Shown piece after piece: positions 1-21,936 of a stretch of DNA of 34,166 nucleotides. Within the stretch, counting starts at the first letter, position 1. The number at the start of each line of letters is the position of its first letter. A model generated the notes under the pieces. It did not search any database, was not told the origin of the DNA, and saw only the letters and a program-made list of their open reading frames with translations. The stretch spans positions 21,834,487 through 21,868,652 of the forward strand of contig NC_069004.1 of the NCBI RefSeq assembly GCF_001194135.2, written 5' to 3'. The position numbers were made by a program, and so were the translations under genes. Source of the stretch: Octopus bimaculoides (taxonomy: Eukaryota).

Positions 1-21
1 TATCGTTACTGTTGTTTGCAG

Positions 22-104
22 GAATTGGACGGAAGAAAAAGAAGAACAAAGTGGAGCAACTGAAAAGATGCAAAAAATCTTTCAATGCATTGTTGGAAGA
101 AGAG
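22..104 (+). CDS. ZNHIT1: ZNHIT1 (zf-HIT subunit of SRCAP/SWR1, Vps71/SWC6 family), internal coding exon; upstream exons lie outside the window
   Basis: tttgcag acceptor ending at 21 and GAG|gtaaga donor at 105. Translates xIGRKKKKNKVEQLKRCKKSFNALLEEE, matching the basic patch plus 'F.ALLEE' of ZNHIT1 as I recall the human protein. 83 nt, ends in phase 0. Confidence 0.9.
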
Positions 105-163
105 GTAAGAAGTCTTCTATTGTTTCTAGTTAACCCTTTCATTACTGACTTCTATTTCTGTCC

Positions 164-569
164 AAGCCACTATTAGGGGTAATTTTGAAAGGGGATAAAA
201 AATAAAAACATTTACCATCTATTTCCTGTACCATGGTTTCAAGCTATCTTCAGCAAATAAAATAATTTGCTAGGCGCAGCTATCATCAGCAGGAAAGCCA
301 AGATTAACATATAAATACGAGGCAATATTTGCTGCTGATAAAAAACTGCACTTGCGCAGTGGATTTATAAAATTATAACATGTAAGCACGAGGCATGTTC
401 TGTATTGCCTCGTATATATATGTTAATCTTGGCTTTCCTGCTGATGATTGGCGCAAACGCCTAGCAAATTATTTTATTTGCTGAAGATAGCTTGAAACCA
501 TGGTATAGGAAATAAATGGTAAATGTTTTTATTTTCATTCCCTTTCAAAATTACCCCTAACAGTGGTTT
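164..569. mobile_element. Fold-back MITE-like element: ~165 bp inverted arms with a ~75 nt loop
   Basis: 164-327 is nearly the reverse complement of 403-569. Outer TTAACCC (130) and GGGTTAG (~593) suggest it may extend into a piggyBac-like TTAA element. Confidence 0.75.
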
Positions 570-680
570 AGATTTTAACTACTTCTTCTAGTGGGTTAGA
601 TGCCCTATTATGGCCATTTCTTATGTGTTTAAATGTACACTGTATTTATATGGATGATATATATATTATGTATTTATATG

Positions 681-685
<5 letters not shown>

Positions 686-721
<36 letters not shown>
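686..721. repeat. (TA)n microsatellite
   Basis: Direct reading. Confidence 0.95.
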
Positions 722-724
<3 letters not shown>

Positions 725-749
725 TCGTCATCATCGTGATGACTTGCGA

Positions 750-1322
750 CTGTGACCTTCGACTGTGACCTTTGACTGTGACCGTGAGAAGACCCGGCAA
801 GCCAAGTGAGACCAAAATCCAAGGCCTCTGCCAGGGATGTAGCCAGCCCACTTACACGTAACATTCCTTCATTGGAAACTAAACTCTGCTTGCGAAGACA
901 TGGTGAGGCAAGTGAAATCGAAATGGAACTATATTTGTAGGCACACTAAACTCGGCTTGCGAAGACTTGTTGGGGCAAGCAAAAGCGAAATCGTGATGGC
1001 TCCTGTACCAGTGGAGCACTAAGAGCACTGTTCGAGCGCGATCGTTGCCAGTGCCGATGGACTGGCTCTTGTGCGGGTGGCACATAAAATACACCATTTC
1101 GAGTGTGGACGTCGCCAGTACCACCTAACTGGCACGTAAAAGCACCCACTACACTCTCAGAGTGGTTGGCGTTAGGAAGGGCATCCAGCTGTAGAAACTC
1201 TGTCAAATCAGATTGGAGTCTGGTGCAGCCATCTGGTTCACCAGTCCTCAGTCAAATCGTCCAACCCATACTAGCATGGAAAGCGGACGTTAAATGACGA
1301 CGATGATGATGATGATGATGAT
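750..1322 (+). mobile_element. 3' UTR/tail of an RTE-type LINE ending in (GAT)n
   Basis: Same tail (ggttggcgttaggaagggcatccagc...ccaacccat..gcatggaaagcggacgttaaa + gatgatgat) as the one following RTE ORF2 remnants at 15485-16783. Confidence 0.75.
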
Positions 1323-1478
1323 GTATACATATGTATATATATATGATACAAGAAGAATAACAACCCGTATATGAATATCTTTCTACTGCTTTATCAGTGA
1401 TTTATAAAAATATATTAAATTATTTACTGAAATTCATTTTGCCAGTTATCTATAATCTATGTTTTTCCTTTTCTCTAG

Positions 1479-1567
1479 CAACTGGCCATTAAAAAGACAC
1501 CAAATTACTTCTCTGCTGTGGTTCCACCATCAAAATTTCCAGAAAAGCATTTCTGTGCCATTTGTGG
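1479..1567 (+). CDS. ZNHIT1: ZNHIT1 coding exon (start of the zf-HIT domain)
   Basis: ttttccttttctctag acceptor, phase 0. Translates QLAIKKTPNYFSAVVPPSKFPEKHFCAICG. Ends at GG|ATATCCTTTT, a U12-type 5' splice site. Confidence 0.92.
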
Positions 1568-1607
1568 ATATCCTTTTACCTGCTGTGTTATTCTTTTAGC
1601 TTTGTCT

Positions 1608-1768
1608 TTTATTCCTTTCAGTCACTTAACTGTGTCTGGATTTTTTTTTAAGCTTAATACTTATTCTACTGGTCTCTTTTGCTGAACCACTAAGTTACAG
1701 CAACATAAACATACCAACACTAATTATCAAGCAGTGGTGGGGGACAAACACACACACACACACACACA
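1608..1768 (-). mobile_element. Truncated SINE beginning about 40 nt inside the U12 intron
   Basis: Similar to the copies at 11128-11324 and 11666-11875 (tttcagtca..., cttattct..., gctgaaccactaagttac..., ggacaaacac). Confidence 0.6.
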
Positions 1769-1809
1769 TTTGGTTAATGAGAGACAGAAGATGGAAGATA
1801 TGACAATCT

Positions 1810-1945
1810 TTATTAATCACTACAATTGTTTTGACACATCTAGCATTGATCCCTCATGGGTAGGATACTTAACTGGTTCAGGAGCATCTAACAGTACAGA
1901 TGTGTCTCTTTGGGTGATAAATAGACATAACTCGTTAAAATAACA
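1810..1945 (+). repeat. Unclassified dispersed repeat; second copy near 30190-30330
   Basis: Shared 'ttgttttgacacatc..gcat.gatccctcatgggt' and 'ctcgttaaa' blocks in the same order. Confidence 0.55.
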
Positions 1946-2707
1946 GTTCTGCAATGTATCTTCTCATTTTGTGTAAAGGAAAGCAGCAAATTAAAGGATA
2001 TATCTTTATTTATATAGAAGATCAATAATAAAATCACAGATACAAAAAAGAAACGAACATGCAATACAGTAATAAAAGTATTAAATATAACCATTAACAG
2101 ATATGGATGTATAAACACCCTTGTGCAGGTTGTATGGCGCCTGTACACGTGCTCATACAAGCATCCATAAAGATGTAAGCATAGACACACATGGTGTGGT
2201 GCACATATGTTCACATAGTTAGTTAAATAGCTACTTGGTGTTTATAAGAATGGGGAGATTAAACCTAAATTTAATTCATCTTTACCTTAAGGTGAATTAT
2301 GTCAACAGTTACTCAAATTCATTTCCACTGCATTGTGCAAAAGTGCATTTATATGCATGGAAGCATCTTGAGAATCCTTCAGAAATTGTATTAATGATTT
2401 TCTCATTGGTCCACGGAATAGACAGGGGTTCCTCAGAGCAGAGACAGTATCTCTTGGAAATGGTATTATATGGTATTGCATGCCTTACTATGAACCAAGT
2501 TATGTTATATTTAATTTTATCTTCCTTAAGTCATCACAAAATTTGCCAAAGATGTTGAATGTCTCTTATTGATTTTCTTGAAGCTGGTGGCATGGTTGCA
2601 ATATTGATTCTTAAATGAATCAGCCATTGCTCCAGTGTAAACATACAGCCCTCCCTTTGTGTGCACAGTACATTTGTGTACAAGATTTGTACTCATACAT
2701 ATATATT

Positions 2708-2834
2708 ATGACAGGCTTCTTTCAACCTGGGGCTATAGTAGGAGACACTTGCCCAAGGTTCAACACAGTGGGACTGAACCTAGAATCATATGGTTCAGAA
2801 GGAAGCTTCTTACGACACAGCCACGCCTGCACCT
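2708..2834 (-). mobile_element. tRNA-derived SINE, internally deleted
   Basis: gacaggcttctttca...ctatagtag.agacacttgcccaagg...cacagccac.cctgcacct; same family as 11351-11515, 26920-27073 and 28412-28583. Confidence 0.75.
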
Positions 2835-3405
2835 TATATAATCATTATTTAGTTATCCCTAACTATTACTCTTCCATTAACCCCATTCTCCTCAACAAAG
2901 TTCTTATTTTAGCTATGAAATATGCATAACTATTTGGGCGAGATATAGGTACCATATTAGTGGCTAGGGAAAGGATTATTGAATAAGAGATTAAATACTG
3001 GGCTGTGTAAAGTAGATCTAACAACTTTGATATAACTACGGGATCACATGACTCAGCACAAGTTACAGATCTAGCAGGTATTTACACATTACACTATCAA
3101 TAAGGAATTCCCAGAAATAGTAGGATAGTTTTTATAGGGAATACACTCTATTCACTCTCCATATATGGTAATGTATTATTGTAAAAAGATAAGAAGAAAA
3201 CTTGGAAAATTCTTTAAACATATAGGACTTTTTTATTTCTTTAGAGCTTGACTGTGAAGCAGTGAACTATCTGGACATAACATTGGACCTTGAACTTGGA
3301 GTTTGAGTTTATCATTTGCATGATGTCTGGTATATAAGTATATGATACACACACACACACATACATATGTATGTGTGTATGTATATATTTGTGTGTGTGT
3401 GTGTA

Positions 3406-3581
3406 TGTTGTAGGGAATTAGTAATAATAGTACACCCCTCTCATGTGGGGAATGGAATAACCTAGTCACTATAAGTAAAGAGAAGTACATGAAGTACCAG
3501 AGTATATAGTAGGCAGTCAGAGATAACGTGTCTTTACTGGTTTTACTAAGTTTACAGTATACCGAGGTGGGCATTATAACA
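3406..3581 (+). mobile_element. Candidate LTR (TGTTG...TATAACA), distantly similar to the LTRs at 21937 and 25696
   Basis: TG...CA ends; shares acacccct, gggga.tggaa, ctag and tataag blocks with those LTRs. No PBS follows it. Confidence 0.45.
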
Positions 3582-3678
3582 ATCCAATATTGTAAGGAAT
3601 GAGGATTTAAATAACTCACAAGGAATTAATAAACTCGACGAGTAAAGTTAATAGAAACTTGAAGAGGAGTTAATAAAT

Positions 3679-3894
3679 TCACAAAGTTGGTGTACGAATT
3701 TTACGAAAAATTTTAGAAGTATAGAAAATTGTCAGCAGGTGTTCTGAATGACCAGCAATTCCTGGTAGTGAATCTATAAAGTTGGTGAAAGTTCTAAACC
3801 AATGATTACAAGTCTTGTCAGCATTTGTGGAGTTTAGGTCGGCATTCAATCTGTCTGCTTTCAAGTATCTTTCCATATATGATATCCTTCCCAA
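3679..3894 (-). pseudogene. N-terminal gag-like fragment of a second LTR-retrotransposon family, antisense
   Basis: MERYLKADRLNADLNSTNADKTCNHWFRTFTNFIDSL resembles Gypsy gag N-termini ('MER.L.PERL..D.....A...W.HW..TF.NF') as I recall them. Confidence 0.5.
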
Positions 3895-4139
3895 TTCATA
3901 CTCATCTTTTCATTAATCTTGTTCTCTATAGATTATTCAACAACTTCTTCAAGATTTTGAAATTATCTTTTTTGATTGTTATGAATGACTAGTAATTCTT
4001 GGCTCAAAGAAACTAATTTCCAATCATAGTCCAAAACAATAAAGTATCATATAGTGCTGTCCGTGATATTTTCGATTAAACATATGTTATTCAAAATGGC
4101 CATTCTCTCTCCCTGATTATCAAATGTGCATGCCCTTTA

Positions 4140-6630
4140 TGTCAAAGGAAATCACTGAAATCTTAGCACAATTTATATAAAAGCAGGTGTGCTTGAGTTG
4201 CAGAAACAGCAACAACAGCAGAAATAACTGCAAGAGCAACAACAACAACAAATGATATTAAGCAACAAATGCTGCAATTACTGAAGTCATCAGGAAAGTC
4301 AGAAAAAGTGTTCTCGACAGACTACGCCACAAATTCCATAACAGAGTTCAAATATGAACCTGATGAAGGAGTTACCTTTGAGACATACTACAGAAAATAT
4401 GAGCAAATCTTCAATAAAGAATGTAAAGGTTGGGATGACAAGATGGAAACACGTTTGTGCTTAAGAAAACTGGTGGCAGCAGAACATGAGCATTACTCTC
4501 AAGAAAACCTGGCATAAACTTTAATGACAATAGATATATATATTGTGTAAAATTTTTAGTGAAAAAAGCTCATTGATCAACACATATTGGAAGTGTCTGA
4601 AAATAGAAAAACACAATGACAAAGACTACATTACATATGCTGGTAGAGTTAACAGGGAATGCAAGAAGTTTAAACTGGAGGAATTAACATCATAAATGCC
4701 TGATTTTTACACAGGGACTTACTGCCAAAAAGAACGCAGAAGTTAGAACTAGAACTCGCAAAGTTGAAACAAAACCAGGTTGTAACCCTACAACAAGTGT
4801 CTGAAGAATGTGAAAGAATAGTCAAATTAAGACAATACACAGAAGAAATTGAACATAAAGATTGTTTCCAAGTAAAGCAAGTGCAAAATAGTCAGAATAG
4901 AGACAAAGTGTTTTCTAAAAACACAACGAAAATCAGGAAATAAACCCATGTTTTGCAAGTGGCAATATACACCTGAGGAAAAATTGTCCATTTAAAAAAA
5001 GTGGAGTCCGTTCATTGTGGTAATATAGGACATATAAAGACGCACTGTAGAATAAAGATGGTAAAATGGCAGAACAAAGGAAAAAGAATAAATAGTATGT
5101 CATTGGAAGAAATTGGAAATATAACAATAAGAAAATTCGTAAAGGTGAAAATCAGAAATACAAGTGTTGAAATGCAATTGGACACTGGTAGTGACATCAC
5201 TATTATAAATGAAAAATACTTGGAAATATGTCAGTAAGTCAAAATTAAATTGTTAAAGGTAGCATATGGTGTTACAGGAAAAAGATTATATTTTTTCACT
5301 GAATTCATATGCAATGTAACATTTTGAGGTTAAACAAAAAAAGCAAAGATATATGTATTAAAATATTTACTTAATCTATTTGGCACAGAGTAGATGGAGC
5401 TATTCAAATTGTGGGATATATTTCTGTGGGGAAATATAGTTGGGTCAGTCAAAGGTTCAAATGAAGCCGAAGGACTGAAACAAAAAATTAAAAAATTATT
5501 TTCAGATGTTTTTTCGGAAGAACTGGGTTGTTGTACAAAAACAAAAGCTAAGATTGTTGTAAAACAAGATGCAACATCAGTTTTTAGACTAAAACAGAAT
5601 GTACCATTTGATCAGGTTAACAAAGAACTTGAAAGACTGGAAAGTCTTGATATAATTGTAAAGACAGACCACACAGACTGGGCAGCACCGACAGTTTACG
5701 TGAAAAAGAAGAATAACAAACTAAGAGTCTGTGCAGATTCTTCAACTGGGTTGAATGATTGTCTAGTTGCACATAACTACCCATTGCCCATTCTGGAGGA
5801 AGTGTTTGCAAAATTGAATGGAGGGAAATTCTTCTCTAACTTAAACCTCTCAGAGGCATATCTACAGATACAAGAAGAATGTGCTCATTTATTAACAATT
5901 AACACACGCCATGGCTTATTTAAATTTAAGCAGCTTCTCTTTGGTGTAAAAGTGGCTCCTGCCATATTTCAGTAAGTAATGGACGCAATGCTGAGTGATT
6001 GTGATTTCGCTATCATCTATCTAGACGATATTTTGATAAAGAGTGAAACGGAAGAAAAAAAAACATATGGAACATGTTAAGAGTATTTGAGAAAATAAGA
6101 AAATGCAGGTTCAAGTTAACAGAGGGAAAATGTCAGTTCTTGTTGAATAAAATCAAATACTTAGGACAAGTAATTGACAAAAACTGTAGAAAACTGGATG
6201 CATCAAGAGCAACAGCGATAAAGAATATGCCCACACCAAAAAATGTAACTATGCTGCAAGCATTCTTGAGTTTGGTAAACTATTACCAAATTTACATTCC
6301 AAACATACATAATGTAAGGGCCCCACTCAATGATCTGTTGAAAAAGAATACAGAATGGTGTTGGATGAATAAGTGCCAGAAGACATTCAAGGAATTGAAA
6401 AGTATTTTAACTTTGGACCTATTACTGACACATTTTGATCCAAAGTTGGATACTCTACTGGCTACAGATGCAAGCGAGTATGGTGCAGGAGCCATACTCC
6501 TGCACAAATACGACAATGGCAGTAAAAAAGCTATAGCTCATGTGTCAAGATCATTATTGCCAGCTGAAAAGAATTATAGTCGGATAGAAAAAGAAGCATT
6601 GGCAATCATATTTGGTGTCAAGAAGTTCCA
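4140..6630 (+). mobile_element. Decayed Ty3/Gypsy (K02A2.6-like) gag-pol remnant, 3' truncated after RNase H
   Basis: Q-rich gag start, CCHC knuckles (~4950-5050), protease LDTGS (5181), RT with YLDD (6018-6029), RNase H 'LATDASEYGAGAIL...AEKNYSRIEKEALAIIFGVKKFH'. Many stops and frameshifts. Confidence 0.92.
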
Positions 6631-6699
6631 TTCAGTAACAATAATAGATTTAAATTATCCTCGACAATTTTTAGTTTTACCAATTTTGAATATATCACT

Positions 6700-6965
6700 C
6701 CTGTTTAAAACTTCTTACCTACTTGACTGTTGCATTTCTAGCTTTGCCTTGAAGGAAGCTTTACTCCTTGGACTCATGTTTTTGTGCGCAACAATGTTAT
6801 TAAACCTCCGTTAACAACACCATATGCAGGTCCTTTCCATTTTCTTACACGCATGGATAAATTTTTTACTATAGACCTTAATGGTCGTAAAGACACTATA
6901 TCAGTGGATAGACTAGAAAAGGCCTTCATAGAGAAAACTGTCTCTGTTCCCACTGCAGACAACAC
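6700..6965 (+). pseudogene. Integrase C-terminal (GPY/F-like) fragment of a different Gypsy lineage
   Basis: RNNVIKPPLTTPYAGPFHFLTRMDKFFTIDLNGRKDTISVDRLEKAF matches the 'PL..PY.GPF.V......F.I..NG..D.VS.DRLK.A' pattern. Confidence 0.7.
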
Positions 6966-7004
6966 ACACAGCCAGCACACCCACCTTCACATTTCATGAC
7001 TACA

Positions 7005-7200
7005 ATTGGGATTGATCAGGTACCGGACAAGGATTCTGGATTATTTTTCCAGTTTTTTTACTTAAATGTTGAGAGTAGTCCAGTTCGTTTTTAGTATTCT
7101 TGTTTGTGAGAGCAGTCGAGTTTATTTCAGATATTCTCATTTTAAAAATCATCTCTGGCTAATCGTTGAGGTTTGCACTCTCTGAGTGCTCTTGCTGTTG
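7005..7200 (-). repeat. Unclassified interspersed repeat fragment ending about 55 nt before the U12 branch point
   Basis: Minus strand gagcactcagagagtgcaaacctc...gagaatatctgaaataaactcgactgctctc...tccagaatccttgtccggtacc, recalled as a common octopus repeat; not verified. Confidence 0.4.
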
Positions 7201-7271
7201 TTGTTGTTATTATTATTATTATGTGTCAATCATTTACATATGTATCACTCAAGCACCTTAACAGTTATAAC

Positions 7272-7352
7272 ATTTCCATCTAATTATAAGTGTGTATCTT
7301 GTGGTGCACGCTACTGTTGTACAAAGTGTCTTGGAACACATCAAGATACACG
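7272..7352 (+). CDS. ZNHIT1: ZNHIT1 coding exon (rest of the zf-HIT domain)
   Basis: Translates (G)FPSNYKCVSCGARYCCTKCLGTHQDT(R), a typical zf-HIT Cys/His pattern. Donor CG|gtgagt at 7353. This frame is not in the supplied ORF track. Confidence 0.93.
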
Positions 7353-7431
7353 GTGAGTTTCAGCATTTTACTTTCTTATTTCTGTATTCCTCTCTCTTTC
7401 GTTATATACGTGTTTATGTGTGTGTTCATTC

Positions 7432-8330
7432 ACCATCATCATCATCGTTTAACATCCACTTTCCATGGACAGTTTGACAGGAACTGGCCAGGCAGAAGAC
7501 TGCACAGACTTCTGTGTCTGTTTTGGCATGGTTTTAATGGCTGGATGCCCTTCCTAACACCACCCATCTTGCAGAGTGGACCGAGTGCTTTTTCTGTGGC
7601 ACCAGCCCAGGCTTATATGTCCACCAGACTGATAAGTGATTAGGTGTCTGGCTGGTTTTCTGAAGTTAGTGTTGCAGATCATGAGATCTTTTGCATCACA
7701 GAATTCCAGTAGCCTTGTTCCCTCCTCATTCCTAGGACCAAAGCCAATACCATCATACACACCATAGGATCCATGAGAATGCTGCCCCATGTGTCCATTA
7801 AAATCACCAGCCACAATAACATCTCTGTCATTTCTTGTTGAGGTAGCATGCAGAAGGACCTCGTAAAATTGGTCCTCAGCCAACTCAGACTGTGGAGCAT
7901 AGGCAGAAATAAATGTAACTCTTAATTTATCTATGACGAGTCTCAGCTTGATAGCCCTATTACATACTCTGACTACCTCAATTACCTTATCTACCCACTT
8001 TTCTGCTAAGAGTATGCCTACCCACTGCATTATTTCTGCCTACAGAAGAATTTGAACCTTTGTTTCTTACCTGCGAGAAATCTAGCAGAGGCTCCCATCC
8101 ATCTTCTTACATACCACGCGCACTAACATGGCAATGCTCCAGCATTTCAATAATCTCACCTGACCCTCCTTTCATTGTGCCAACATTGATGATAGCAGCC
8201 CTAAAACTGTATACTTGGGAGTGACAGTTGCTGTGGAACATTTGTCAGCACCTGAAAAGAAGATCAGTGCAAATGCTCAGATCTATGCTACTTGCCAGGT
8301 AGCATAGAACTTTGGTACTTCCTCAATCCC
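7432..8330 (-). mobile_element. Internally deleted RTE-type LINE: apurinic endonuclease domain fused directly to the 3' tail
   Basis: EN motifs 'INVGTMKG', 'VGILLAEKW', 'ISAYAPQ', 'VAGDFNGH', 'EEGTRLLEFC', 'ITYQSGGH', then an abrupt switch (~7603) to the (GAT)n-ending tail. No RT domain. Confidence 0.85.
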
Positions 8331-8462
8331 ATACAACATCCAGATTAAGGGCTAATGAGGATAGAAGTAAAGAGGTCATGAAAGTAGGGCATGCAGGTTG
8401 ACCAGGAAGAAAGGTGGGGTGGCCACATAACATGGTATAAATTTTATGCTTATATATATATT

Positions 8463-8892
8463 TAAGACCTGTCAAGCCAAGTGAAATTGTAGTCGTCTCC
8501 AATGCTGGTGTCATGTAACTGGCACTTGTGTGGGTGGCACGTATAAAGCACTTTTCGAGCATTAGGCCTCATAGAGGCAAAGTAGCCAATGCCGGTGGCA
8601 CATGAAAAGCACCTTTCGAGTGTTAGGCCTCATGGAGGCAATGACAAATGACTGAAACCTTTGGCATTATGCCATGCTTGACAAGAAAACCTATCAAGCC
8701 AAGTAAAATTGCAATCATGGCAGATACTGGTGTCACGCAAATGGCACCTGTGCCGGTGGAATATAAAAGCACTCTTGGAGTGATTGGCATTAGGAAGGTC
8801 ATCCAGCCATAGAAACCATGCCAAATCAGACTGGAGTCTGGTGCAGCCTTCCAGCTTGTCAGCCCTGGTCAAACTGGTTAAATGATGATGAT
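8463..8892 (+). mobile_element. RTE-type LINE 3' tail with internal modular subrepeats
   Basis: Same family as 750-1322 and 16280-16783; ends aaatgatgatgat. Confidence 0.75.
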
Positions 8893-8899
8893 ATGTATG

Positions 8900-8919
8900 T
8901 ACACGTTACACACACACAC

Positions 8920-8974
<55 letters not shown>

Positions 8975-8988
8975 CACACACATATACA
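8900..8988. repeat. Compound (CA)/(TACA)/(TA) microsatellite
   Basis: Direct reading. Confidence 0.9.
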
Positions 8989-9818
8989 GTCCACGTAAAT
9001 GCACACTTAGATGTGTATAAGTAGCTAAGGAAGCAAGCCATGTATGTTTAGATTAAAATGGTGGAGGTGGTGGTTTGTAATGGGTTTGTGAAAATTGACT
9101 GTGCTCAGAGCCTACACAAAAAAATAATAATAGTTCCTAATTATTATTTGCTAAACAGACTTACAATAAATTGTAATATTTAATTATTATTAATACAATA
9201 TTTATACACATGTACAGCATATTTATTGTATAAACATATAAGCAATGAGGAGGATCACTAAACTACATGGTCTTAGCAAGTGGGATGTTGATGGGAGAGA
9301 GGAAATTTAAGGTATAGATCGAGTTACATTTGAATAAAATAAGAACTTAGCTGTTGTTTTGTGAACAGGCTATAGGCCAAAGTGAATGATAATAACAAAC
9401 TATTCTTCAAATAGTTAAAATACTGTCATGGGTTAGGTGAATACTAATTCATCTTTCCATCATTTTACTAAATCGTCTTCCCATCATCTTTGAGGCCTCT
9501 GAGTAGTCTTTTCCAATCTCTTGGATACCTCTCTGCAACTTTGTGTTTTCACCTGTTGTCTGACAATAGAGAGTTAGGGGAGTCTTCAGTCTTGCTAAGG
9601 GTAACCTCTCTAGTGCTGGGTGGGTGGGTGAAAATCTAATTGAGTACTATGTATACATCTAAGACTATGGCAGCTGAAGGTGATCAAAGAGTAAACCAAT
9701 CAAAATGAAGAGGTGTAAATATTTGTAAAATATACATTCTAAAGATGAAGTTAATTAAAAGTTTGATGGGAAATTATTATTGAACTTGTAATTTAATTTT
9801 ATTTTCTTACTCATTTAG

Positions 9819-9840
9819 ATGCCTAAAATATACTGCATGA
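9819..9840 (+). CDS. ZNHIT1: ZNHIT1 last coding exon
   Basis: attttcttactcatttag acceptor, phase compatible. Translates (R)CLKYTA* (human ends RCLKWTV*); stop TGA at 9838-9840. Confidence 0.88.
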
Positions 9841-9981
9841 TGAGCTGATGATGAAGTTCAGAAGGAGCCATATTTAAAGGTGTCATTTGAAGCCACTGGA
9901 GTAAAATGTAACAGAATATGACCAACAGATACACAGTCCATTCCATTTGCCTGCACACATCAGATGAAGAAAAAAAAGAGG

Positions 9982-10195
9982 AATAAACAACAGAATTGGT
10001 GATTTTTATTACAAGCTACTTTTGCTGTTTTAAATGTGATGAAAATATCAGGCAAAACAGCAAAATATAACATTGTTGCTGTTTCATACTAAACTCAATT
10101 AGTGATGAGGAAGTGATGAGAAACAGTTTTTTAATCTAAAGTTGGAATCTATCTGACATTGTAAATAACAGCTTTCTTTTTTGTTTTTCAATAAA
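9982..10195 (+). terminator. Candidate ZNHIT1 polyadenylation signals
   Basis: AATAAA at 9982-9987 and 10190-10195 downstream of the stop; motif only. Confidence 0.35.
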
Positions 10196-10243
10196 CCAAA
10201 TAATCTTAAAAGATTCTCAATGACTTCAGTACTTGATGTTATT

Positions 10244-10340
10244 TTAACCCTTTAGCATTCAGATTATCCTGTCAAATGTAATGCTTATTTATTCATATTG
10301 TTTGGAATTAGTCATGCATTACCTTGTAACTTAGAGTTAT
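10244..10340. mobile_element. End fragment of a TTAA-CCC (piggyBac-like) MITE between the two genes
   Basis: ttaaccctttagcattcagatta...gtcaaatgtaatgc; only one end is recognisable. Confidence 0.35.
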
Positions 10341-10824
10341 TTTTTATTTATTCCATTTGTCTTCACAGGGCAGAAAACCCAAATGTCAAAAGGAATGTAA
10401 AAACTACAGGATATCAGCTCTCTCTTTCTCACACACACACACACACATAAACACAAACACATATGTATGTTGTCTCAGCATGTCTTCATATTGACACCTT
10501 TTGAGCAAAAAAACAAGATGACATCAGGAAGGGAATCCTTTCATAGAATAATTTCTAAAGAAATCTTGTCCAGTCTACACCAGGATGGAAAAGCCTACTC
10601 AAAAATTGATGTTTACTCTCTCTCACACACACACACACACAGAAGTTCACACAACATTGGTCAACTCTAATCTACAGCAGGTAACACCAGCACAAGTGCC
10701 ATTCACTCTGAAATTACATGGTTGCAAAATGAGCTTCTTACCCCGCAACTATATTCCCACTAATAAAGGACACATCTAAAAGGACACATGAAAAAATGAA
10801 AACAAACAAATAAATATCTTATAA

Positions 10825-10830
10825 TTTATT
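10825..10830 (-). terminator. Candidate polyadenylation signal of the JmjC/cupin-like gene
   Basis: AATAAA on the minus strand about 110 nt past the stop; motif only. Confidence 0.35.
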
Positions 10831-10941
10831 AAATCCATCTTTTCTGACCCAGCCTTTTTTTTTTTTTTTTTTAAATCCTTTGCTATGAAATCTAATGTGG
10901 TTGGCATTGATCTTCAGCCAATCACATGAAATAAGATTATT

Positions 10942-11027
10942 TCAGTCATACTCTGATCCGATAGCAATACTCACCTCTTTAAGATGGATGTAAGTAGAAT
11001 GATACCACTGATTGGTGTCCAATATAA
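10942..11027 (-). CDS. JmjC/cupin-like protein, coding exon 4 (last)
   Basis: ttccttttgtcttgtag acceptor. Translates (L)ILDTNQWYHSTYIHLKEVSIAIGSEYD*. The four exons total 680+136+133+86 = 1035 nt = 344 aa + stop. Confidence 0.9.
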
Positions 11028-11127
11028 CTACAAGACAAAAGGAAATAAATTATCATAAATATAAATATACACAGATTTATATGCATAGCACATATTCATG
11101 ATATCACATAATTCACAGGAAAACATA

Positions 11128-11324
11128 TTCTTTTATTTGTTTCAGTCATTTGACTGCGGCCATGCTAGAGCACCGCCTATAGTCAAACAAATCGACCCCA
11201 GGACTTATTCTTTGTAAGCCTAGTACCTATTCTATCAGTCTTTTTTGCCAAACCGCTAAGTTATGGGGATGTAAACACATCAACATTGGTTGTCAAGCAA
11301 TGGTGGGGGACAAACACAGACACA
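11128..11324 (-). mobile_element. SINE (3' part)
   Basis: tttcagtcatttgactgcggccatgctagagcaccgcc...cgaccccaggacttattctttgtaagcc; near-identical copy at 11666-11875. Confidence 0.8.
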
Positions 11325-11350
11325 CAAAAAAATATATATATATAAATTAT

Positions 11351-11515
11351 ACGACAGGCTTCTTTCAGTTTCCGTCTACCAAATCCACTCACAAGGATTT
11401 GGTCGGTCTGAGGCTATAGTAGAAGACACTTGTCCAAGGTGCCACGCAGTGGGACTGAACTTGGGACCTTGTGGTTGGCAAGCAAGCTACTTATCACACA
11501 GCCACTCCTGCACCT
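11351..11515 (-). mobile_element. tRNA-derived SINE
   Basis: Minus-strand head ggtgcaggagtggctgtgtgataag...ggttcagtcccactgcgtggc with A/B-box-like motifs. Confidence 0.85.
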
Positions 11516-11665
11516 TAGATGAACTTATTAACTCCTCAATCCATGAACCAAGTTTGACATAAAAAATTCTATGAAATCTCATAAATAATTATATGCACAT
11601 ATTCAAACAGGAACAAAATGCATATTGCAGGGATGTGTGAATGCAAAAATGATTTTTCTTAAATA

Positions 11666-11875
11666 TTCTTTTATTCTTTTACTTGTTTCAGTCATTTGAC
11701 TGTGGCCATGCTGGAGCACCACCTTTAGTCGAACAAATCGACCCCAGGACTTATTCTTTGGAAGCCTAGTACTTAGTCTGTCGTTCTCTATTGCTGAATC
11801 ACTAAGTCACAGGAACGTAAACACACCAACATTGGTTGTCAAGCAATGGTTGGGGGGGGACAAACACAGACACAC
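11666..11875 (-). mobile_element. SINE (3' part), second copy
   Basis: Aligns with 11128-11324. Confidence 0.8.
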
Positions 11876-12709: not shown

Positions 12710-13991
12710 CACGAGGGAGTACTCCCAAAAAACTGGAATTTTGCAGTATTAATTTATTCACTTAGCTTTACATGTTTACACTTTTATTGCCTTCAAAGTA
12801 TTCTCCATTTGAAGCAATGCATCAATCCAGATGCGTTTTCCACAGTTCGAAGCAGTCCTGGAACTCTTGCGAAGTGATGCCTTTTAACACTTCTGTCGTT
12901 TTTTTTTTCTTCACCTCTTCCGCATCTGCAAAACGTCTTCCTTTAAGGACTTTTTTCATTTGAGGTAACAGAAAAAAGTCACAGGGAGCAAGTTCGAGTG
13001 AATAGGAAGGGTGGGTAAGCAAGGTCATGCCACTTTTGGCAAAAACTGTCTCACACTCAAAGCAGCGTGTGCAGGCACATTGTCATGATAAAACCACCAC
13101 TTTCCACTTTCCCACAGGTCAGAGCATTTTTGTCTCACTGCGTCTCGTAAACACTTCAGAACTGCTAAGTAAAATGTCTGGTTAGCAGTTTGACCAGGAG
13201 GAACAAATTCTATGTGGACAATTCCCTTTGCATCAATGAAACAAATCAGAATCGTCTTGATATTGGACTTCACTTGATGCGCTTTTTTGAGGCATGGTGA
13301 CACTGAATGCTTCGATTGCCTTGATTGCTGCTTCATTTCCAGGTTGTAGCCATAGCATCAGCTTTTGTCACCCGTGATGACCTTCGGAAAAAGGTCCAGA
13401 TCAACTTCCAACTGTTATTTTAGTTGTGATTGCTTTTGACCTTCCTTGAGCAAGTGAGGCACAAATTTTGCTGCAACACTTTTCTTTCACAATTCCTTGC
13501 TCAAAATTCTTTGGCTGGAACTCCAGGATACACCAATCATATCAACAAGTTCTTCAATTGTTCAGCAACAATCCTCCAAGATCAGTTCATGAATTTCCAT
13601 GATGTCGCCCTGAACGAGGTTGGTCTTCAAGTGACAAAAGACCATTCCTAAAGCATGAAAACCACTTGTAAACTTGTGTTTTGCTGATGGCAGCATTCTT
13701 GTAAGCTGTTTGAAGTATGGCAACTGTTTCGGCTGCCACTTTCCCCAGCAGAAAACAGAATTTCTTGGAAGCATGCTGTTCCTTCATTTCAGCCATCACA
13801 GAAATTGACAAATGGGAAAAGCACTGCAAAGCAAAGACGCACCATGTGGCAGTACAACTTCAGTCAATGACACCGGTTGGCAGACTGATGCCTGAGGGTC
13901 GCATCAAGTGGCTTCTAGCAGTAAAAGCCTGGACCACCACAGGCTTGTCCCATAGAGAACATTTCTGGTTACGTTTGGTTACACCCTTATA
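12710..13991 (-). mobile_element. Decayed mariner (Tc1/mariner) transposon, ~1.28 kb
   Basis: HTH-like N-terminus 'KFCFLLGK.AAETV..LQTAY...AISKTQVYKWF..FRNG..SLED.PRSGR', catalytic 'WFYHDNVPAH' and 'YSLELAPCDFFLLP'. Degenerate TIRs acgagggagtactcccaaaaaactggaa and rc(ttctggttacgtttggttacacccttata). Frameshifted. Confidence 0.9.
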
Positions 13992-13993
13992 TA

Positions 13994-14075
13994 ATGTTAT
14001 CAAAAAGTTCTGGGACTAGTTATGCTTAATAAAAAATAACTTATTTACCTAAGTTCTCATATAAACATTGGCATG
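13994..14075. mobile_element. End fragment of a second mariner-like element abutting the first
   Basis: atgttatcaaaaagttctgggactag resembles mariner TIRs of the 'tcaaaaagttcccggac' type. Confidence 0.35.
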
Positions 14076-15484
14076 CACAAGCTTTCTCGCATAAGATAAT
14101 TAAGGAATTAATTTTGCAATGCAAGGTAGATACCAATCAAGATATTCTTATAAGTTGCCTCCAGTGATCTGTGCATTTATTTCAAAATCCCATTCAGTCT
14201 CATGTAACCTTGCACATTCTCCTCTAAAATGGGGACAAGTACCAACACTTCTGTGTGGCATGCTTGAACAATTGTGAAAATCTCTTCACATGAAGCCATT
14301 GGTTGCCTTGTTAACCCATAAATAAGTAAGTATATTTATATATATACAACATTAAAACATTGCCCAAATGAAATTTAAAATCTACCAATAATCAACATTA
14401 TAGTCAATTAGGAATACATAAATTCATTATTAATTATTGAACTTAGATAATTAATCTGAATGGATCTAACATCACATCAATGACCATGTTCTATTCAAAT
14501 AATGACATTTTTCAACAAGATACTAACCCAATTTTTACTTAAATCATACTCATTGTATTTTTACCTTGTTCACAATATGTAAAAGATATAAGATTGAAAC
14601 TCAGAACATGAGTTGCTCTAAAAACTGCAAGAGCCAATGAAGTAGCCTGTCAATTACATCCTTCTAATTATAAAAAAAAAACAGAAGGGCACATCAAATA
14701 ATGTAAATCTGGAAATACACTCCTGGGGTACTTTTGGCTGTACCTTGTTTACATGGAATAAAATTCTTCAATGAAATCGTGTTTTGTACATGAAGACCCC
14801 TTCTAATGCTAACATTTTTAGTCACCTCTTATAATACATAGGAATGTGGTTAATTATTCTGAACTGGGAATTATTGAATAGAAGAAGTGGATTGAGCTCA
14901 GTAATGATAACTAAAGTGAGGTGCATATGGAAGAAATTCTGGAAGCAGTGGAGAAGAAATTAAGAAGGGGATTGTTACTGAAGAGAAAAGTATATGCTGT
15001 AAGGTGAACAGAACATAAATCTCATTAGTTCAGTGAATGAGTTTGGAGAGGAAACCAAACAATGAATTGCAGCGTATGATAAAATAGAACCACTGATGGG
15101 TGTTGTGAAGAGAAATGGAATGGAATGGTTGAGTCATGTACTGAAAAGATGAAAGTGAGCAAAGGAATGAATGTGGAAAGGAAGTAGATGAAGGAGAAAA
15201 CTATTGATTCTTCTACCCACAGACTTTGTAAAACTTTATGATAATAATTGTTTCTAATAAGACCAGAAATTTTTTGGAGGAATCAGTTGATTACATAAAC
15301 GTCAGTACTTGACAGCTACTTTATTTTATTGACTCAACACAGGAAGGATAAAAGGTTATGTGTCTTTGGGTAGCTTTTATCTCAGAATGTAAATTACAGG
15401 AACCAATATCACAAAACATTTTGTTTTACAGTGCTCTATTGATTTTCCTATCCAATGGTCTTTGTGATGATTTATAATAATTTT

Positions 15485-16783
15485 GGGTAGTGTAGCAAGG
15501 TCTAGACTCAAAGAGCCTTAGAGTTAATCTAGCAAAAACCAAAGTCTTAGTAAATAGGAAAGCAGACAAATCACAAATCACTGCTCAATCTGTAGAAAAG
15601 GCATAGGTAGAAATTCCATAAGATGTACCTGGTATAAGCTATGGATACATAAGAGGTGTAGCAATATCAGAGAAAGGTTAACAGGGAAAATATTTTTCAT
15701 GTGTGGAAGGTGCACAGGTACAATTAACACTAAAAATGTACACCAAATGCCAGGGAGGATACCTAGAAGCAGTTGATAGCTTCTGTTATCTAGATGACCA
15801 AGTCAGTAGCAGAGGTGGATGCTCCAAGACCATAACTGCTAGAATACGAATAGGCTGGACAATATTCAGAGAGTTCCTACCTCTGTTCGGCAGATTGTAT
15901 GATGCCTCTGTGTGAACAGCCATGCTACACAGCAGTGAAACAGGGCTGTGACTGCTGAGAACATGCATAGGCTTGAAAGAAATGAAGCTGGTATGCTTCA
16001 CTGGATGTGCAATGTCAGTGTGCATGTACGACAGAGTGTAAGCATCTTGAGAGAAAAGTTGAGTATAAGAGGCATCAGATTTGGTGTGCAAGGGAGACGA
16101 CTGTGCTGGTATGGTCATGTGATGCATATGGATGAGGATAGCTGTGTGAAGAAGTGCCGATCTCTAAAAGTGGAGGGAAACCCAGGAACACACTGGAGGA
16201 GGTGGTGAAGCATGATCTTCAAATGTTGGGTCTCACAGAGGCAATGACTAGTGATTGGGACCTTTAGTGGTGTACCATGCTTGAGAAGATCCATCGAGCC
16301 AAGTGAAATCATAGTTGTGGTTGTTGTCAGTATCACATAACTGCCACCCATGCTGGTGGCATGTAAATAGCACCTTTCGAGTATTGGGCCTCATGGAGGT
16401 AATGCGGCTGATGCTGGTGTCATGTAACTAGTACCCTTGCTAGTGACATGTAAGAAGCACCTTTCAAGTGTTGGGCCTCACAGAAGCCATAACAAATAAC
16501 CAAGACCTTTGGCAATATGCTGTGCTTGAGAAAAAGGCCCATCAAGCCAAGTGAAATTGTAGTTGCGACAGATACTGGTGTCATGCAACTGGCACATGTG
16601 CCAGTGGTACACAAAAGCACCGTTACACTCTCAGAGTGGTTGGCATTAGGAAAGGCAACCAGCCATAGAAACCATTCCAAATCAGACTGGAGTCTGGTGC
16701 AGTCCCTCAGCTTACCAGCCCTGGTCAAACTGTCCAACCCAAGCCAGCATGGACAACAGATGTTAAACGATGATGATGATGAT
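15485..16783 (+). mobile_element. 5'-truncated RTE-type LINE (end of RT, ORF2 C-terminus, modular 3' tail)
   Basis: 'LRVNLAKTKVL', 'EAVDSFCYL', 'ARIRIGW..FRE.LP', 'RLERNEAGMLHWMC', 'RRLCWYGHV', followed by the (GAT)n tail. Confidence 0.88.
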
Positions 16784-16844
16784 TATGTTTCTGATTTAGG
16801 TACAATGACAGCAAGTTTAAAGAAAGGAGTTAGTACCATCTGCT

Positions 16845-16975
16845 AGTACTAGACTGGTACTTTATTTTATGGATTCTGGAGAGATGAAAGGCAAAGTTAA
16901 CCTCAGTGGGATTTCGATTCAGAAGATAAAGAGCCAGAACAAATACTGCAATATATTATCTCTGTTACTAATGTT
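16845..16975 (-). mobile_element. Degenerate SINE fragment; a similar one lies near 15270-15470
   Basis: ctggtactttatttt...gatgaaaggcaaagttaacctcag is the reverse complement of the 27782-27995 family core. Confidence 0.55.
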
Positions 16976-17032
16976 TGTATGAAGCAACAATGACAAGAAC
17001 AGCAAAGTAAAAAATGAGAACAAGTGACTCAC

Positions 17033-17165
17033 GAATATCTCCAGTTTCCATGGTAACATTCAGAGTATATTTGCATAAATGTTCACACTCCGGAGGAACA
17101 ATAAGCATAAATGTTTTCTTACCAGCTATCATAGCTTGCCATGATGGGCGTTTTACTGCATCAAT
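17033..17165 (-). CDS. JmjC/cupin-like protein, coding exon 3
   Basis: ctcattctattatag acceptor. Translates IDAVKRPSWQAMIAGKKTFMLIVPPECEHLCKYTLNVTMETGDI. Donor C|gtgagt, phase 1. Confidence 0.9.
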
Positions 17166-17684
17166 CTATAATAGAATGAGGATGGTGCAACCATTGAGAA
17201 CAAGATGATGATTAAAGATTGTCATTTAGTGCAACTTGAAGTTATAGAAACATATTGTTTAGATATGGGAACACCATAATCATCACATTTGTCATGTTTG
17301 ACCAAATTTAATTGTTATGAATAAAAATTTCCACTCACTAACATAAAGTCTATACATATATAAATGTGTGTGTATATGGTGTGTACACACATGCATATGT
17401 CTAAATTTAACAGAGCAAGGTATTTAAGAAATAATTATATATCTATGTAACTTTTGCTAAACCAAAGATTTTCAAGAAAAATCTTTGAACTCCCAATTTG
17501 CATAAAAATATGCTGTTTATGGTCCTTTGTTAATGCAGTTTTCAACTGCACAAAATGAATCTTAATTCACTGCAACATCTACTTCGTGTTTCCATCTATA
17601 AATATATTCATGACTAACTTCTGACTCAAATGAGTGCATTCGTCTCTCACTTGCAGTGGCATACATACCTATACTAATTGGTTC

Positions 17685-18373
17685 CAGGAGACACGACTTA
17701 GGTTGGAAAATGATTTAAGTCGAATTAACTTGTCTCTAGGCTAGGCTAGGCTGATAAGAACCATTCCCAGTTCTGTACTTTATTTATGAATGCATTTTCA
17801 ATAATACATGGTTAATAAAACCCATTTTAAGCTTACAAACAAATAATTTTTATTTTTTAATACTGTACAGTAAAAAAAAAAGTAATCTAAATTTATGAAT
17901 ACAATTTGGAGGTGTTTACCATACATCACAGACGCTTTATTTATGAATGTGGTTTGCAATAAGACATGGTAAAATAAAAGTCTTTTTTAAGCTCAAAAAA
18001 CAAATTCAGTAATTATTATTATTTTGCAATATTAAAAAAAAAATTGATTATTTTAAATTTACCAATATGTACATACAATTTAGTGGTTCTGTGATTTCAT
18101 GATTTCATTCACTAAGCGACACTACTTTATGATGTGTATCTTAACATTTACTGTACATATGATTTTATATGCTTTTATTCTTATTTATTGTACAGTAACA
18201 TGATTTTATGTGCTTTTAACAGTTTTGTAGTGATTTTATGATTCCAATCTTTGTGGTGACAGACGTAAAGTCAAGTAAAATGATTTTTTATTTTTCCATA
18301 TCTTATTTTTGAAAACCGAAGTATAATCAAGAATGACTTAAATCAAAATGACTTAAGCCGAGGTATGCCTGTA
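17685..18373. mobile_element. pogo/Tigger-like MITE with an internal ~100 bp tandem duplication
   Basis: Right end reads (rc) TA-CAGGCATACCTCGGCTTAAGT, Tigger-like; left end caggagacacgacttag is degenerate. Duplicated block near 17780-17880 and 17938-18050. Confidence 0.45.
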
Positions 18374-18387
18374 CTTAAAAGCAACAA

Positions 18388-18500
18388 GCTGACAGAATGG
18401 GGAAAATTCTTTGGATGCATTTCGTCCATCCTTACATTCTGAGTTCAGATTCCATCAAAGTTAGCTTTGCCTTTCATCCGTTTGGGGTTGAGAAAATAAA
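18388..18500 (+). mobile_element. Degenerate SINE fragment
   Basis: cattctgagttcagattcc...gctttgcctttcatcc.tttgggg, as in 27600-27772. Confidence 0.6.
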
Positions 18501-18510
18501 AAATAAATAC

Positions 18511-19578
18511 TGTAGTGAAACTACTTCCCGCCATTAGATACAAACTACTATCGCCATTACATACATTCTTCTCATTTAAATATAAATAAATGCGAGCGTA
18601 GTAGAGAACCCATTCCTTGTCATCACGTGACTGATCATTATTCGAATCGGCAACTTCTTCGAACCGTTCCCGTCAGAACGCAAACTGACCAATCACGGCC
18701 CCTAATAAGGTCACGTGATAGAGTAAAATTCTGAAGGCATTTGGAGCCCTCTTAACGCTATATATAGATCAACTCATACCCCACAATTGGTCTCGGTCCA
18801 GTNNNNNNNNNNNNNNNNNNNNNNNNNNNNNNNNNNNNNNNNNNNNNNNNNNNNNNNNNNNNNNNNNNNNNNNNNNNNNNNNNNNNNNNNNNNNNNNNNN
18901 NNNNNNNNNNNNNNNNNNNNNNNNNNNNNNNNNNNNNNNNNNNNNNNNNNNNNNNNNNNNNNNNNNNNNNNNNNNNNNNNNNNNNNNNNNNNNNNNNNNN
19001 NNNNNNNNNNNNNNNNNNNNNNNNNNNNNNNNNNNNNNNNNNNNNNNNNNNNNNNNNNNNNNNNNNNNNNNNNNNNNNNNNNNNNNNNNNNNNNNNNNNN
19101 NNNNNNNNNNNNNNNNNNNNNNNNNNNNNNNNNNNNNNNNNNNNNNNNNNNNNNNNNNNNNNNNNNNNNNNNNNNNNNNNNNNNNNNNNNNNNNNNNNNN
19201 NNNNNNNNNNNNNNNNNNNNNNNNNNNNNNNNNNNNNNNNNNNNNNNNNNNNNNNNNNNNNNNNNNNNNNNNNNNNNNNNNNNNNNNNNNNNNNNNNNNN
19301 NNNNNNNNNNNNNNNNNNNNNNNNNNNNNNNNNNNNNNNNNNNNNNNNNNNNNNNNNNNNNNNNNNNNNNNNNNNNNNNNNNNNNNNNNNNNNNNNNNNN
19401 NNNNNNNNNNNNNNNNNNNNNNNNNNNNNNNNNNNNNNNNNNNNNNNNNNNNNNTATATGCCGCATTCACACTCACACACAGACATACATCTTTAACGCT
19501 ACAATAAATATCTCTGTTATTCATCTAATACGGTTGTGGTCTTTCATTACTGGTCATCTATGTTATCGTCGTATAACA
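18511..19578 (+). mobile_element. Candidate LTR-like segment spanning the assembly gap
   Basis: TGTAG... start, two CACGTG, CCAAT and TATATATA before the gap; AATAAA and a ...TATAACA end after it; CpG-rich. No TSD found. Confidence 0.3.
18803..19453. other. Assembly gap (651 N)
   Basis: Direct reading. Confidence 1.
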
Positions 19579-19907
19579 TATCATGTATATCATCATCTCT
19601 GATATATATATTTTGTGTTCGACCGTGTGACGCGTTTAAATAAAAGGAGTCCTCTGTTTTTCCATTCGTCACCATATCTCCTTTTTGAGTTTGCATGGTC
19701 GTCCCTTACAATACCATTTGAGCATTGGGGGGGGGGGCAATGTAATCAACTTAGCCCCTCCCCTGAAATTGTTGGCGTTGGACCAAAATTTGAAACCAAT
19801 ATTCATATACTTAAGTTTTGAAGATATACACAGACTTCTCAGATTTCATTATTGTAAACAGTGAGATGTTACATAACAACCATAACTTACAGCCAACATT
19901 TGTGTCA

Positions 19908-20129
19908 TTAACCCTTTCGTTACTGTATTTCTTTTGAGATGCTTTGTGTTTCTTTCAATTATTTTAAATATAACAAAGAATTTAGTAAAATAACTTAGTT
20001 ATCATTCAGCTAGTGTTAGGAACATAAATTGTGACTAAGGTTTGGTGGAAGATTTTAATTGAAAACTTATGAAAACAAGACATTTGTACTCAGAGCTGGT
20101 TTCAGCTCGGTTGGTAACAAAACAGTTAA
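19908..20129. mobile_element. TTAA-flanked MITE (piggyBac-like ends), 222 bp
   Basis: ttaaccctttcgttac ... gtaacaaaacagttaa; 13 of 16 terminal positions are complementary. Confidence 0.65.
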
Positions 20130-20257
20130 GGCCACCACTGTGGTATCATTTAAACTACTTGTACTGTCTTATTACAATCAGTACTCATCTGTGTCACTGA
20201 AACATTACCAAAATGTTTCCCAACATGACTACTGAGTTATTATTGGTGTTGATGTGT

Positions 20258-20412
20258 TTATGCCCCCCAAACTTAGCAGATTGGCAAAAGAGACCAATGT
20301 TCCAGGCATAAAAACAAAAAACAGGTACTGGTGTCAATTCATTCGACTAAAAATTCTTCAAGGCAGTGCCCTAGCATGGCCACAGCCTAATAAATGAAAC
20401 AATTAAAAAGTA
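20258..20412 (+). mobile_element. SINE 3' part whose A-rich tail is the insertion site of the palindromic element
   Basis: Reverse complement of the 11128-type SINE (cgactaaa...aaggcagtgccctagcatggccacag...tgaaacaa). Confidence 0.65.
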
Positions 20413-20901: not shown

Positions 20902-21119
20902 AATTAAAAAGTAATAGGTAAAAGGAACCCCAGAACTAATAAGACTGCTTACTCAGTTTCCATGGAGATCAAGACTACAACAGTACACTTGAATGTGATG
21001 CTGGTCAATTGCAGGGTTCAAGGCCAGCAACTTTTGAGGGGAGGAAGAAGCAAGTTGATTACAGAGATTGCCATGTTGGGTGACACATATGGCAGTCAAA
21101 GTAGTTGAACAGAAATGGA

Positions 21120-21882: not shown

Positions 21883-21936
21883 CTTAGAAGAAGAAAAAGA
21901 AAATTAGTTTTAAGTAACAAAATATAACTAAATGAC

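Follow-up and report, generated by a model that had tools for sequence, protein, structure and literature searches.

An AT-AC intron with minor-spliceosome signals splits the HIT zinc finger of octopus ZNHIT1 and is probably ancestral in animals

In a stretch of 34,166 nucleotides from Octopus bimaculoides (contig NC_069004.1, in the following called the window) the gene ZNHIT1 is interrupted within its HIT zinc finger by a long intron that begins with AT and ends with AC. Which spliceosome removes this intron, and is it a peculiarity of the octopus? The first-pass annotation of this DNA had proposed that positions 1568-7271 are a U12-type AT-AC intron splitting the ZNHIT1 zinc finger. This proposal is borne out by the splice motifs, by the annotated protein, which maps in one way only, and by conservation from sponge to mollusc, and we regard it as very probable that the intron depends on the U12-type, minor spliceosome and belongs to the AT-AC subtype.

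The peptide encoded in the window is 100% identical to the NCBI entry 'zinc finger HIT domain-containing protein 1 [Octopus bimaculoides]' (P0222, 164 aa); the full-length protein is present in NCBI, UniProt and EukProt. Orthologues were gathered by an exhaustive HMMER search and an alignment query. The ZNHIT1 proteins of named metazoans showed 55-74% identity to the window peptide, and that of Argonauta 93% over an 85 aa stretch encoded in the window. Judged by its sequence, the octopus gene is ZNHIT1, the orthologue of SWC6/Vps71. From this orthology the protein would be a member of the SRCAP/SWR1 H2A.Z-exchange complex with a role in H2A.Z deposition.

For the exon structure an exact spliced mapper was written in which an intron may be GT-AG, GC-AG or AT-AC. 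It was run on L004 (GCA_001194135.2, chromosome CM046624.1), in which positions 13232-25071 correspond to positions 1-11840 of the window with 100% identity. P0222 mapped as a single chain of six coding exons, four of them inside the window, with four GT-AG introns and one AT-AC intron (1568-7271). No other chain of GT-AG, GC-AG or AT-AC introns encodes P0222, and therefore the public octopus gene model already uses the AT-AC intron. Coding exons 1 and 2 are situated upstream, outside the window. The remaining features of the gene are the following:

22 to 104, plus strand: coding exon 3 of 6 of ZNHIT1 (..GIGRKKKKNKVEQLKRCKKSFNALLEEE), with the acceptor ttgcag/ before it and the donor /GTAAGA after it.
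105 to 1478, plus strand: ordinary GT-AG intron of 1,374 nt (GTAAGA...TCTCTAG), from the spliced mapping.
1479 to 1567, plus strand: coding exon 4 of ZNHIT1, 89 nt, with the acceptor ctctag/ before it and ending in ..HFCAIC GG/.
1568 to 7271, plus strand: predicted U12-type AT-AC intron of ZNHIT1, 5,704 nt, phase 2.
1568 to 1577, plus strand: predicted 5' splice site ATATCCTTTT, an exact match to the U12 AT-AC consensus /ATATCCTT.
7255 to 7262, plus strand: predicted branch-point box ACCTTAAC, matching seven of the eight bases of TCCTTAAC, with CCTTAAC at 7256-7262; it ends 9 nt before the terminal AC.
7270 to 7271, plus strand: 3' terminal AC, not preceded by a strong polypyrimidine tract.
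7272 to 7352, plus strand: coding exon 5 of ZNHIT1, 81 nt (FPSNYKCVSCGARYCCTKCLGTHQDT plus CG), followed by the donor /GTGAGT.
7353 to 9818, plus strand: ordinary GT-AG intron of 2,466 nt (GTGAGT...CATTTAG), from the spliced mapping.
9819 to 9840, plus strand: terminal coding exon of 22 nt, (R)CLKYTA, with the stop codon TGA at 9838-9840.

No exon for a C-terminus of the form C[LIVM][KR]W was found farther downstream, because octopus ZNHIT1 ends in CLKYTA.

The AT-AC intron interrupts a glycine codon (GG/A) between the first CxxC pair of the HIT finger and the other six zinc ligands. Exon 4 ends with this first CxxC and two nucleotides of the glycine codon, and exon 5 encodes the six remaining ligands. 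When the two exons are joined (170 nt), they encode QLAIKKTPNYFSAVVPPSKFPEKHFCAICG/FPSNYKCVSCGARYCCTKCLGTHQDT, the junction region reading ...HFCAICG/FPSNYKCVSCGARYCC. The joined exons matched zf-HIT (Pfam PF04438) with E=2.9e-9 and 36.9 bits, the gathering cut-off of this family being 24.7 bits. The 5' site, the 89 and 81 nt exons, the CCTTAAC close to the AC and the restored zf-HIT frame were thus all found where the first-pass annotation had placed them.

Could the splice motifs have arisen by chance? The G+C content of the window is 36%. In the window ATATCCTTT was seen twice with 0.55 occurrences expected, while CCTTAAC followed within 5-12 nt by AC was seen twice with 1.5 expected. Several points weigh against a minor-spliceosome intron. 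Either motif by itself is within chance expectation for the window. The first position of the branch box ACCTTAAC is A, not T, and the predicted branch A at 7261 is only 10 nt away from the last intron base, near the short end of the usual range. The proposed 1567^7272 junction draws on annotation and comparative evidence, and the dependence on U11, U12 and U6atac would follow from the sequence of the splice sites. As for their placement, both motifs are situated exactly on exon edges that were set independently by protein homology, with a probability of about 8e-6 x 2e-5 per position pair; this placement is far beyond chance. Moreover, both motifs recur at this codon position in at least five named species and in seven further complete metagenome loci (see below). 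In U12 introns the branch box lies about 10-26 nt, mostly 10-15 nt, upstream of the 3' splice site, and phase 2 is typical, as is a weak pyrimidine tract. The pyrimidine content at positions -25 to -4 of the octopus 3' end is 55%, which agrees with the lack of a strong tract, a soft criterion.

We considered whether the major spliceosome could instead use cryptic GT-AG or GC-AG sites near the boundaries, ATATCC and CCTTAAC being incidental. Such sites exist: 32 in-frame, stop-free GT/GC-AG pairs were enumerated near the boundaries, for example 1564/7264, which would give ..HFCAIFITFPSNY.., and the published model of the Lottia gene has a pair of this kind. None of the 32 pairs restored the conserved CxxCG-FPSxYxC spacing, and zinc ligands are deleted or displaced in every alternative. 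The products of four representative in-frame pairs scored 14.6-24.4 bits against zf-HIT, all below 24.7, whereas the AT-AC product scored 36.2 bits in this comparison. The alternative donors (GTGGAT, GTGCCA, GTGTTA) are of poor quality, and no pyrimidine tract precedes the acceptor at 7264. Moreover, the U12 motifs are kept across phyla within introns that are otherwise unalignable (see below). Cryptic GT-AG splicing therefore appears very improbable to us.

The Lottia model illustrates how such pairs come to be annotated. The locus concerned is:

L001 (KB201549.1), 10321 to 11425: Lottia gigantea ZNHIT1.

The JGI model P0002 reads through the 5' site (..CAVCGYPFYFIQFSCGARY..) and then invents a GT-AG intron. 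It thereby arrives at the nonconserved CGYPFYFIQFS, whereas the AT-AC join of the same DNA gives FSSNFTCVQCG. Models with the same read-through ('CGYP..') were also found in Solemya velum, Geodia barretti, Actinostola sp. and Desmophyllum pertusum, and the models of Tegillarca granosa and Branchiostoma belcheri are broken exactly at the minor-intron site and are probable mis-readings (besides P0002, the mis-read model proteins are P0076, P0128, P0143, P0146, P0021 and P0132). The break in B. belcheri is indirect evidence for the intron in amphioxus. In octopus the tblastn alignment extends into the start of the intron, because the first intron codons (Y-P-F-T-C) mimic F-P-S-x-Y-x-C; the same mimicry, visible in octopus too, is the cause of the read-through models. 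This single intron is hence a reproducible annotation trap, with at least five public models reading through /ATATCC as 'GYP..' and two more breaking there. Since ZNHIT1 models go wrong at this intron, pipelines restricted to GT-AG and GC-AG introns corrupt a conserved chromatin factor. The warning in the first-pass annotation that standard GT-AG predictors would mis-model the gene holds for Lottia, Solemya, Geodia, Actinostola and Desmophyllum; the NCBI model of the octopus gene already contains the intron.

The signals of the minor spliceosome were also looked at in other animals. Five named species, Octopus included, have an AT-AC intron that agrees in codon and phase, with an /ATATCC 5' site, a box of the form [TA][CT]CTT[AG]A[CT] and a predicted branch A 9-14 nt from the terminal AC. 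The four species besides the octopus are:

Lottia gigantea (gastropod): intron of 931 nt, 5' site ATATCCTTTT, box and 3' end TCCTTAAC..AC.
Anneissia japonica (crinoid): intron of 664 nt, 5' site ATATCCTTTT, box and 3' end ACCTTAAC..AC.
Nematostella vectensis (cnidarian): intron of 279 nt, 5' site ATATCCTTTT, box and 3' end TTCTTGAC..AC.
Amphimedon queenslandica (sponge): intron of 118 nt, 5' site ATATCCTC, box and 3' end TCCTTAAC..AC.

Beyond the splice boxes these orthologous introns are unrelated in length and sequence. Metagenome contigs were scanned as well, with eight metazoan ZNHIT1 sequences as query. Fifteen loci with CxxCGG/ATATCC were found; the complete AT-AC intron was present in seven of them (356-1,281 nt, box TCCTTAA[CT] or TTCTTAAT), the other eight being 5' sites. 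Two metagenome loci with the intron were closest to Acropora. One further contig, L003, contains the 3' half of the intron only (ATCCTTAAC..AC/ATTTCC).

These data also bear on whether the major spliceosome could remove the intron as an AT-AC intron of its own. Rare U2-type AT-AC introns are without a U12 branch box, and their 5' site is /ATAAGT-like (GTRAGT with A in place of G1). The AT-AC termini alone leave the type of spliceosome undecided, as is established (see also PMC10639083). The octopus 5' site, however, is ATATCCTTT (ATATCC) and not ATAAGT-like, and a TCCTTAAC-type box is found 9-14 nt from the 3' end in all species examined. Both boxes, the defining U12 signals, are conserved. 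Splicing of this AT-AC intron by the major spliceosome is therefore highly unlikely.

Finally, the exons could stem from a pseudogene or an assembly artefact without functional splicing. The region is indeed full of repeats and transposons, and a run of N stands elsewhere in the window. The six coding exons are nevertheless intact and in order with a complete open reading frame, the encoded protein is as highly conserved as the Argonauta comparison indicates, the GT-AG sites of the remaining four introns are good, and the AT-AC intron itself is free of gaps. We give this explanation next to no credence.

As for transcripts, full-length cephalopod-like ZNHIT1 proteins (P0231 and P0377-379), 82% identical to that of the window, contain FCAICGFPSWYTC, and cephalopod-like ZNHIT1 proteins were called on more than 150 Logan contigs, each of at most 2.1 kb. 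Logan contigs this short with full-length ZNHIT1 can only be spliced mRNA, so they provide indirect transcript support for the predicted joining of exons 4 and 5, in addition to the protein entries in NCBI, UniProt and EukProt.

Where is the intron absent? Absence was scored on genomic loci that have other introns but a one-exon finger, Ciona having an intronless gene. In the skate Rhinoraja the finger is encoded in one exon of exactly 170 nt, corresponding to 89+81, and both flanking intron positions are kept. In the owl Athene residues 91-148 of ZNHIT1 are contiguous in the genome according to tblastn. The first-pass annotation had put the matching human region down as a single exon; this holds for the two vertebrates examined, the skate and the owl, and it fits the human and mouse data of the minor-intron database MIDB. 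The MIDB tables of minor-intron genes in human and mouse list ZNF207, ZPR1 and ZC3H8 but not ZNHIT1, and a ZNHIT entry was found neither in the MIDB 2019 supplements nor in the supplement text of the 2023 survey. Unlike SCN1A and ZC3H8, ZNHIT1 is thus not a human or mouse minor-intron gene according to MIDB, because vertebrates are without this intron.

Outside the vertebrates, the Ciona intestinalis ZNHIT1 gene consists of a single exon (L008, AP043570.1, 501-1028); all ancestral introns are gone, and the neighbouring gene begins 8 bp downstream. Metagenome contigs with a one-exon finger were closest to the tunicate Phallusia, closest to parasitoid wasps, 97% identical to Daphnia, or 92-93% identical to termite ZNHIT1. 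Termites are represented by these termite-like genomic contigs, as the Cryptotermes record is an mRNA contig and uninformative on introns. Two further metagenome loci, L062 2125-2298 and L067 2439-2588 (JAAUXT010008359.1 and JAAUXW010016413.1), contain finger residues ~94-151 in one exon; their ZNHIT1 is ~81% identical to the scallop protein, which suggests that a lophotrochozoan-like lineage, too, lost the minor intron independently. In rice SWC6 the finger is undivided by an intron and encoded in one exon, and in the glomeromycete Gigaspora it is encoded in one exon of 176 nt.

Going by these gene structures, the intron position is kept in sponges, cnidarians, echinoderms and molluscs and was not gained in the octopus. 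Most parsimoniously, the last common ancestor of animals already had the intron, and precise losses followed in vertebrates, in tunicates and in pancrustaceans; with one plant and one fungus sampled, a gain along the stem of the animals and an older origin are not separable. The comparison of intron positions among ZNHIT1/SWC6 orthologues that the first-pass annotation had proposed found the intron in molluscs, crinoid, cnidarian and sponge and none in rice. That annotation had considered a gain or loss in one lineage. The loss part stands, although repeated in several lineages, whereas neither a gain in octopus nor a single lineage agrees with the data. Nor does the intron appear to be a feature of this one animal: it is probably ancestral in Metazoa, being present in gastropod, crinoid, cnidarian and sponge.

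The last GT-AG intron was compared as well. Octopus, crinoid, sea anemone, sponge, skate and Gigaspora share the same 22 nt terminal exon ((R)CLK[WY]T[AV]-stop), preceded by an intron of the same phase. The exon was located at:

Window, 9819 to 9840.
L002, 7227 to 7248.
L005, 2493 to 2514.
L006, 1386 to 1407.
L007, 7638 to 7659.
L012, 1284 to 1305.

As this GT-AG intron is common to animals and Gigaspora, its position is older than the animals; it is not present in rice.

Why is the octopus intron so long? Inside it we found the remains of a transposon:

About 4269 to 6814, plus strand: decayed LTR-retrotransposon in sense orientation inside the AT-AC intron, with broken open reading frames, from Pfam matches.

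The matches were to a gag-like DUF7083 (E=4e-12) and RT_RNaseH_2 (E=1e-28), with a weak reverse transcriptase match and an aspartyl protease fragment. Microsatellites are also situated within the intron. Orthologous introns measure 118-1,281 nt, and the octopus intron grew to 5.7 kb by transposon insertion, the element making up much of its length. An Rfam scan of the whole window, the AT-AC intron included, detected no RNA family; the intron therefore does not host a known snoRNA or any other known RNA family.

Further transposon fragments were observed elsewhere in the window. A LINE-type endonuclease fragment (Exo_endo_phos_2, E=1e-7) is located at 7554-8030 on the minus strand, in the last ZNHIT1 intron, a mariner-type transposase fragment (Transposase_1, E=5e-9) at 13025-13336 on the minus strand and a second gypsy-like RNase H fragment at 24490-25307 on the plus strand, next to an open reading frame without Pfam match. 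An assembly gap of 652 N at 18803-19454 is situated outside the ZNHIT1 gene. About 1.1 kb beyond the ZNHIT1 stop codon starts a convergent gene on the minus strand (from ~10942 to at least 11840), whose annotated 344 aa product has a faint Cupin_8 match. On the minus strand, an open reading frame of 227 aa at 28618-29301, which matches Cupin_8 very weakly (E=0.1), may be the first exon of this convergent neighbour.

By analogy with other minor introns, splicing would proceed as follows. The U11/U12 di-snRNP, a complex of two small nuclear ribonucleoproteins, would bind two sites jointly, U11 the 5' site AUAUCCUUU and U12 the branch site ACCUUAAC; U4atac/U6atac.U5 would then join, and U6atac would take over from U11 at the 5' site. 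A bulged A near 7261 would attack the 5' site. The AC that follows 10 nt further on would serve as 3' site, being selected for its closeness to the branch point. Splicing would then join GG/A into the glycine codon and complete a HIT finger of the form CxxCG-FPSxYxCxxC...C...C...H...C. If the intron is retained, reading continues with ..CGYPFTCCVILL.. up to a stop codon at 1683-1685, giving a product with the first CxxC only. As this stop codon is far upstream of the last exon junction, nonsense-mediated decay of the retained-intron transcript is plausible. As the retention product has the first CxxC only, functional octopus ZNHIT1 should need the minor spliceosome. Control of H2A.Z deposition by the minor spliceosome, as suggested in the first-pass annotation, would be a hypothesis that goes beyond this.

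Could this dependence be the reason why the intron has been kept? One might suppose that it was kept from sponges to cephalopods as a regulatory gate that acts by slow or conditional AT-AC splicing. If so, retained-intron transcripts with the stop at 1683 would adjust how much of a limiting subunit of SRCAP/SWR1 is made, and H2A.Z deposition would thereby be tied to the activity of the minor spliceosome. On deleting the intron, vertebrates, tunicates and pancrustaceans would have given up the gate. We consider such a gate unlikely. Irrespective of it, most non-vertebrate animals, unlike vertebrates, would be expected to need the minor spliceosome for ZNHIT1 expression, which is of relevance when minor-spliceosome phenotypes are compared between model organisms. 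The intron is also a useful marker for reconstructing minor-intron loss, as 89 and 81 nt have become one exon of 170 nt in vertebrates.

Genome-wide minor-intron surveys already cover Octopus; molluscs, with Octopus sinensis among the species sampled, are reported to have retained comparatively many minor introns (PMC10639083). A full-text literature search returned unrelated papers only and none that linked ZNHIT1 to a minor intron or to U12 splicing. The octopus intron itself is an ordinary U12-type AT-AC intron already contained in the NCBI gene model. What is added here is a minor intron in a subunit of a chromatin-remodelling complex that is probably ancestral to all animals, its clean loss in vertebrates and the recurrent annotation errors it causes.

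How does this intron compare with known ones? Intron F of P120/NOP2 is a classic U12 AT-AC intron. Like the U12 AT-AC introns of SCN1A and ZC3H8, the octopus intron has the /ATATCCTTT 5' site and a TCCTTAAC-type box near the 3' end, and it shares the AT-AC termini, the weak pyrimidine tract, the non-zero phase and the deeply conserved position of U12 introns. In the MIDB supplement, the SCN1A and ZC3H8 minor introns of both human and mouse, with MIDB scores of 98-100 on a scale of 0-100, have the very nine intronic 5' bases of the octopus intron. The branch box of human ZNF207, TGTGCCTTAACA, is scored 84 out of 100 in MIDB and is comparable to the octopus box ACCTTAAC. U2-type AT-AC introns have the same terminal dinucleotides; the octopus intron differs from them by lacking an /ATAAGT-like site and by having both U12 boxes. 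It differs from the known U12 AT-AC introns by its unusual length of 5.7 kb and in that its minor splicing is predicted from sequence. Compared with ZNHIT1/SWC6 elsewhere, the octopus gene shares its flanking intron positions with skate and even Gigaspora, whereas the HIT finger, which is split by the minor intron in octopus and many invertebrates, is encoded in one exon in vertebrates, Ciona, pancrustacean-like contigs, rice and Gigaspora.

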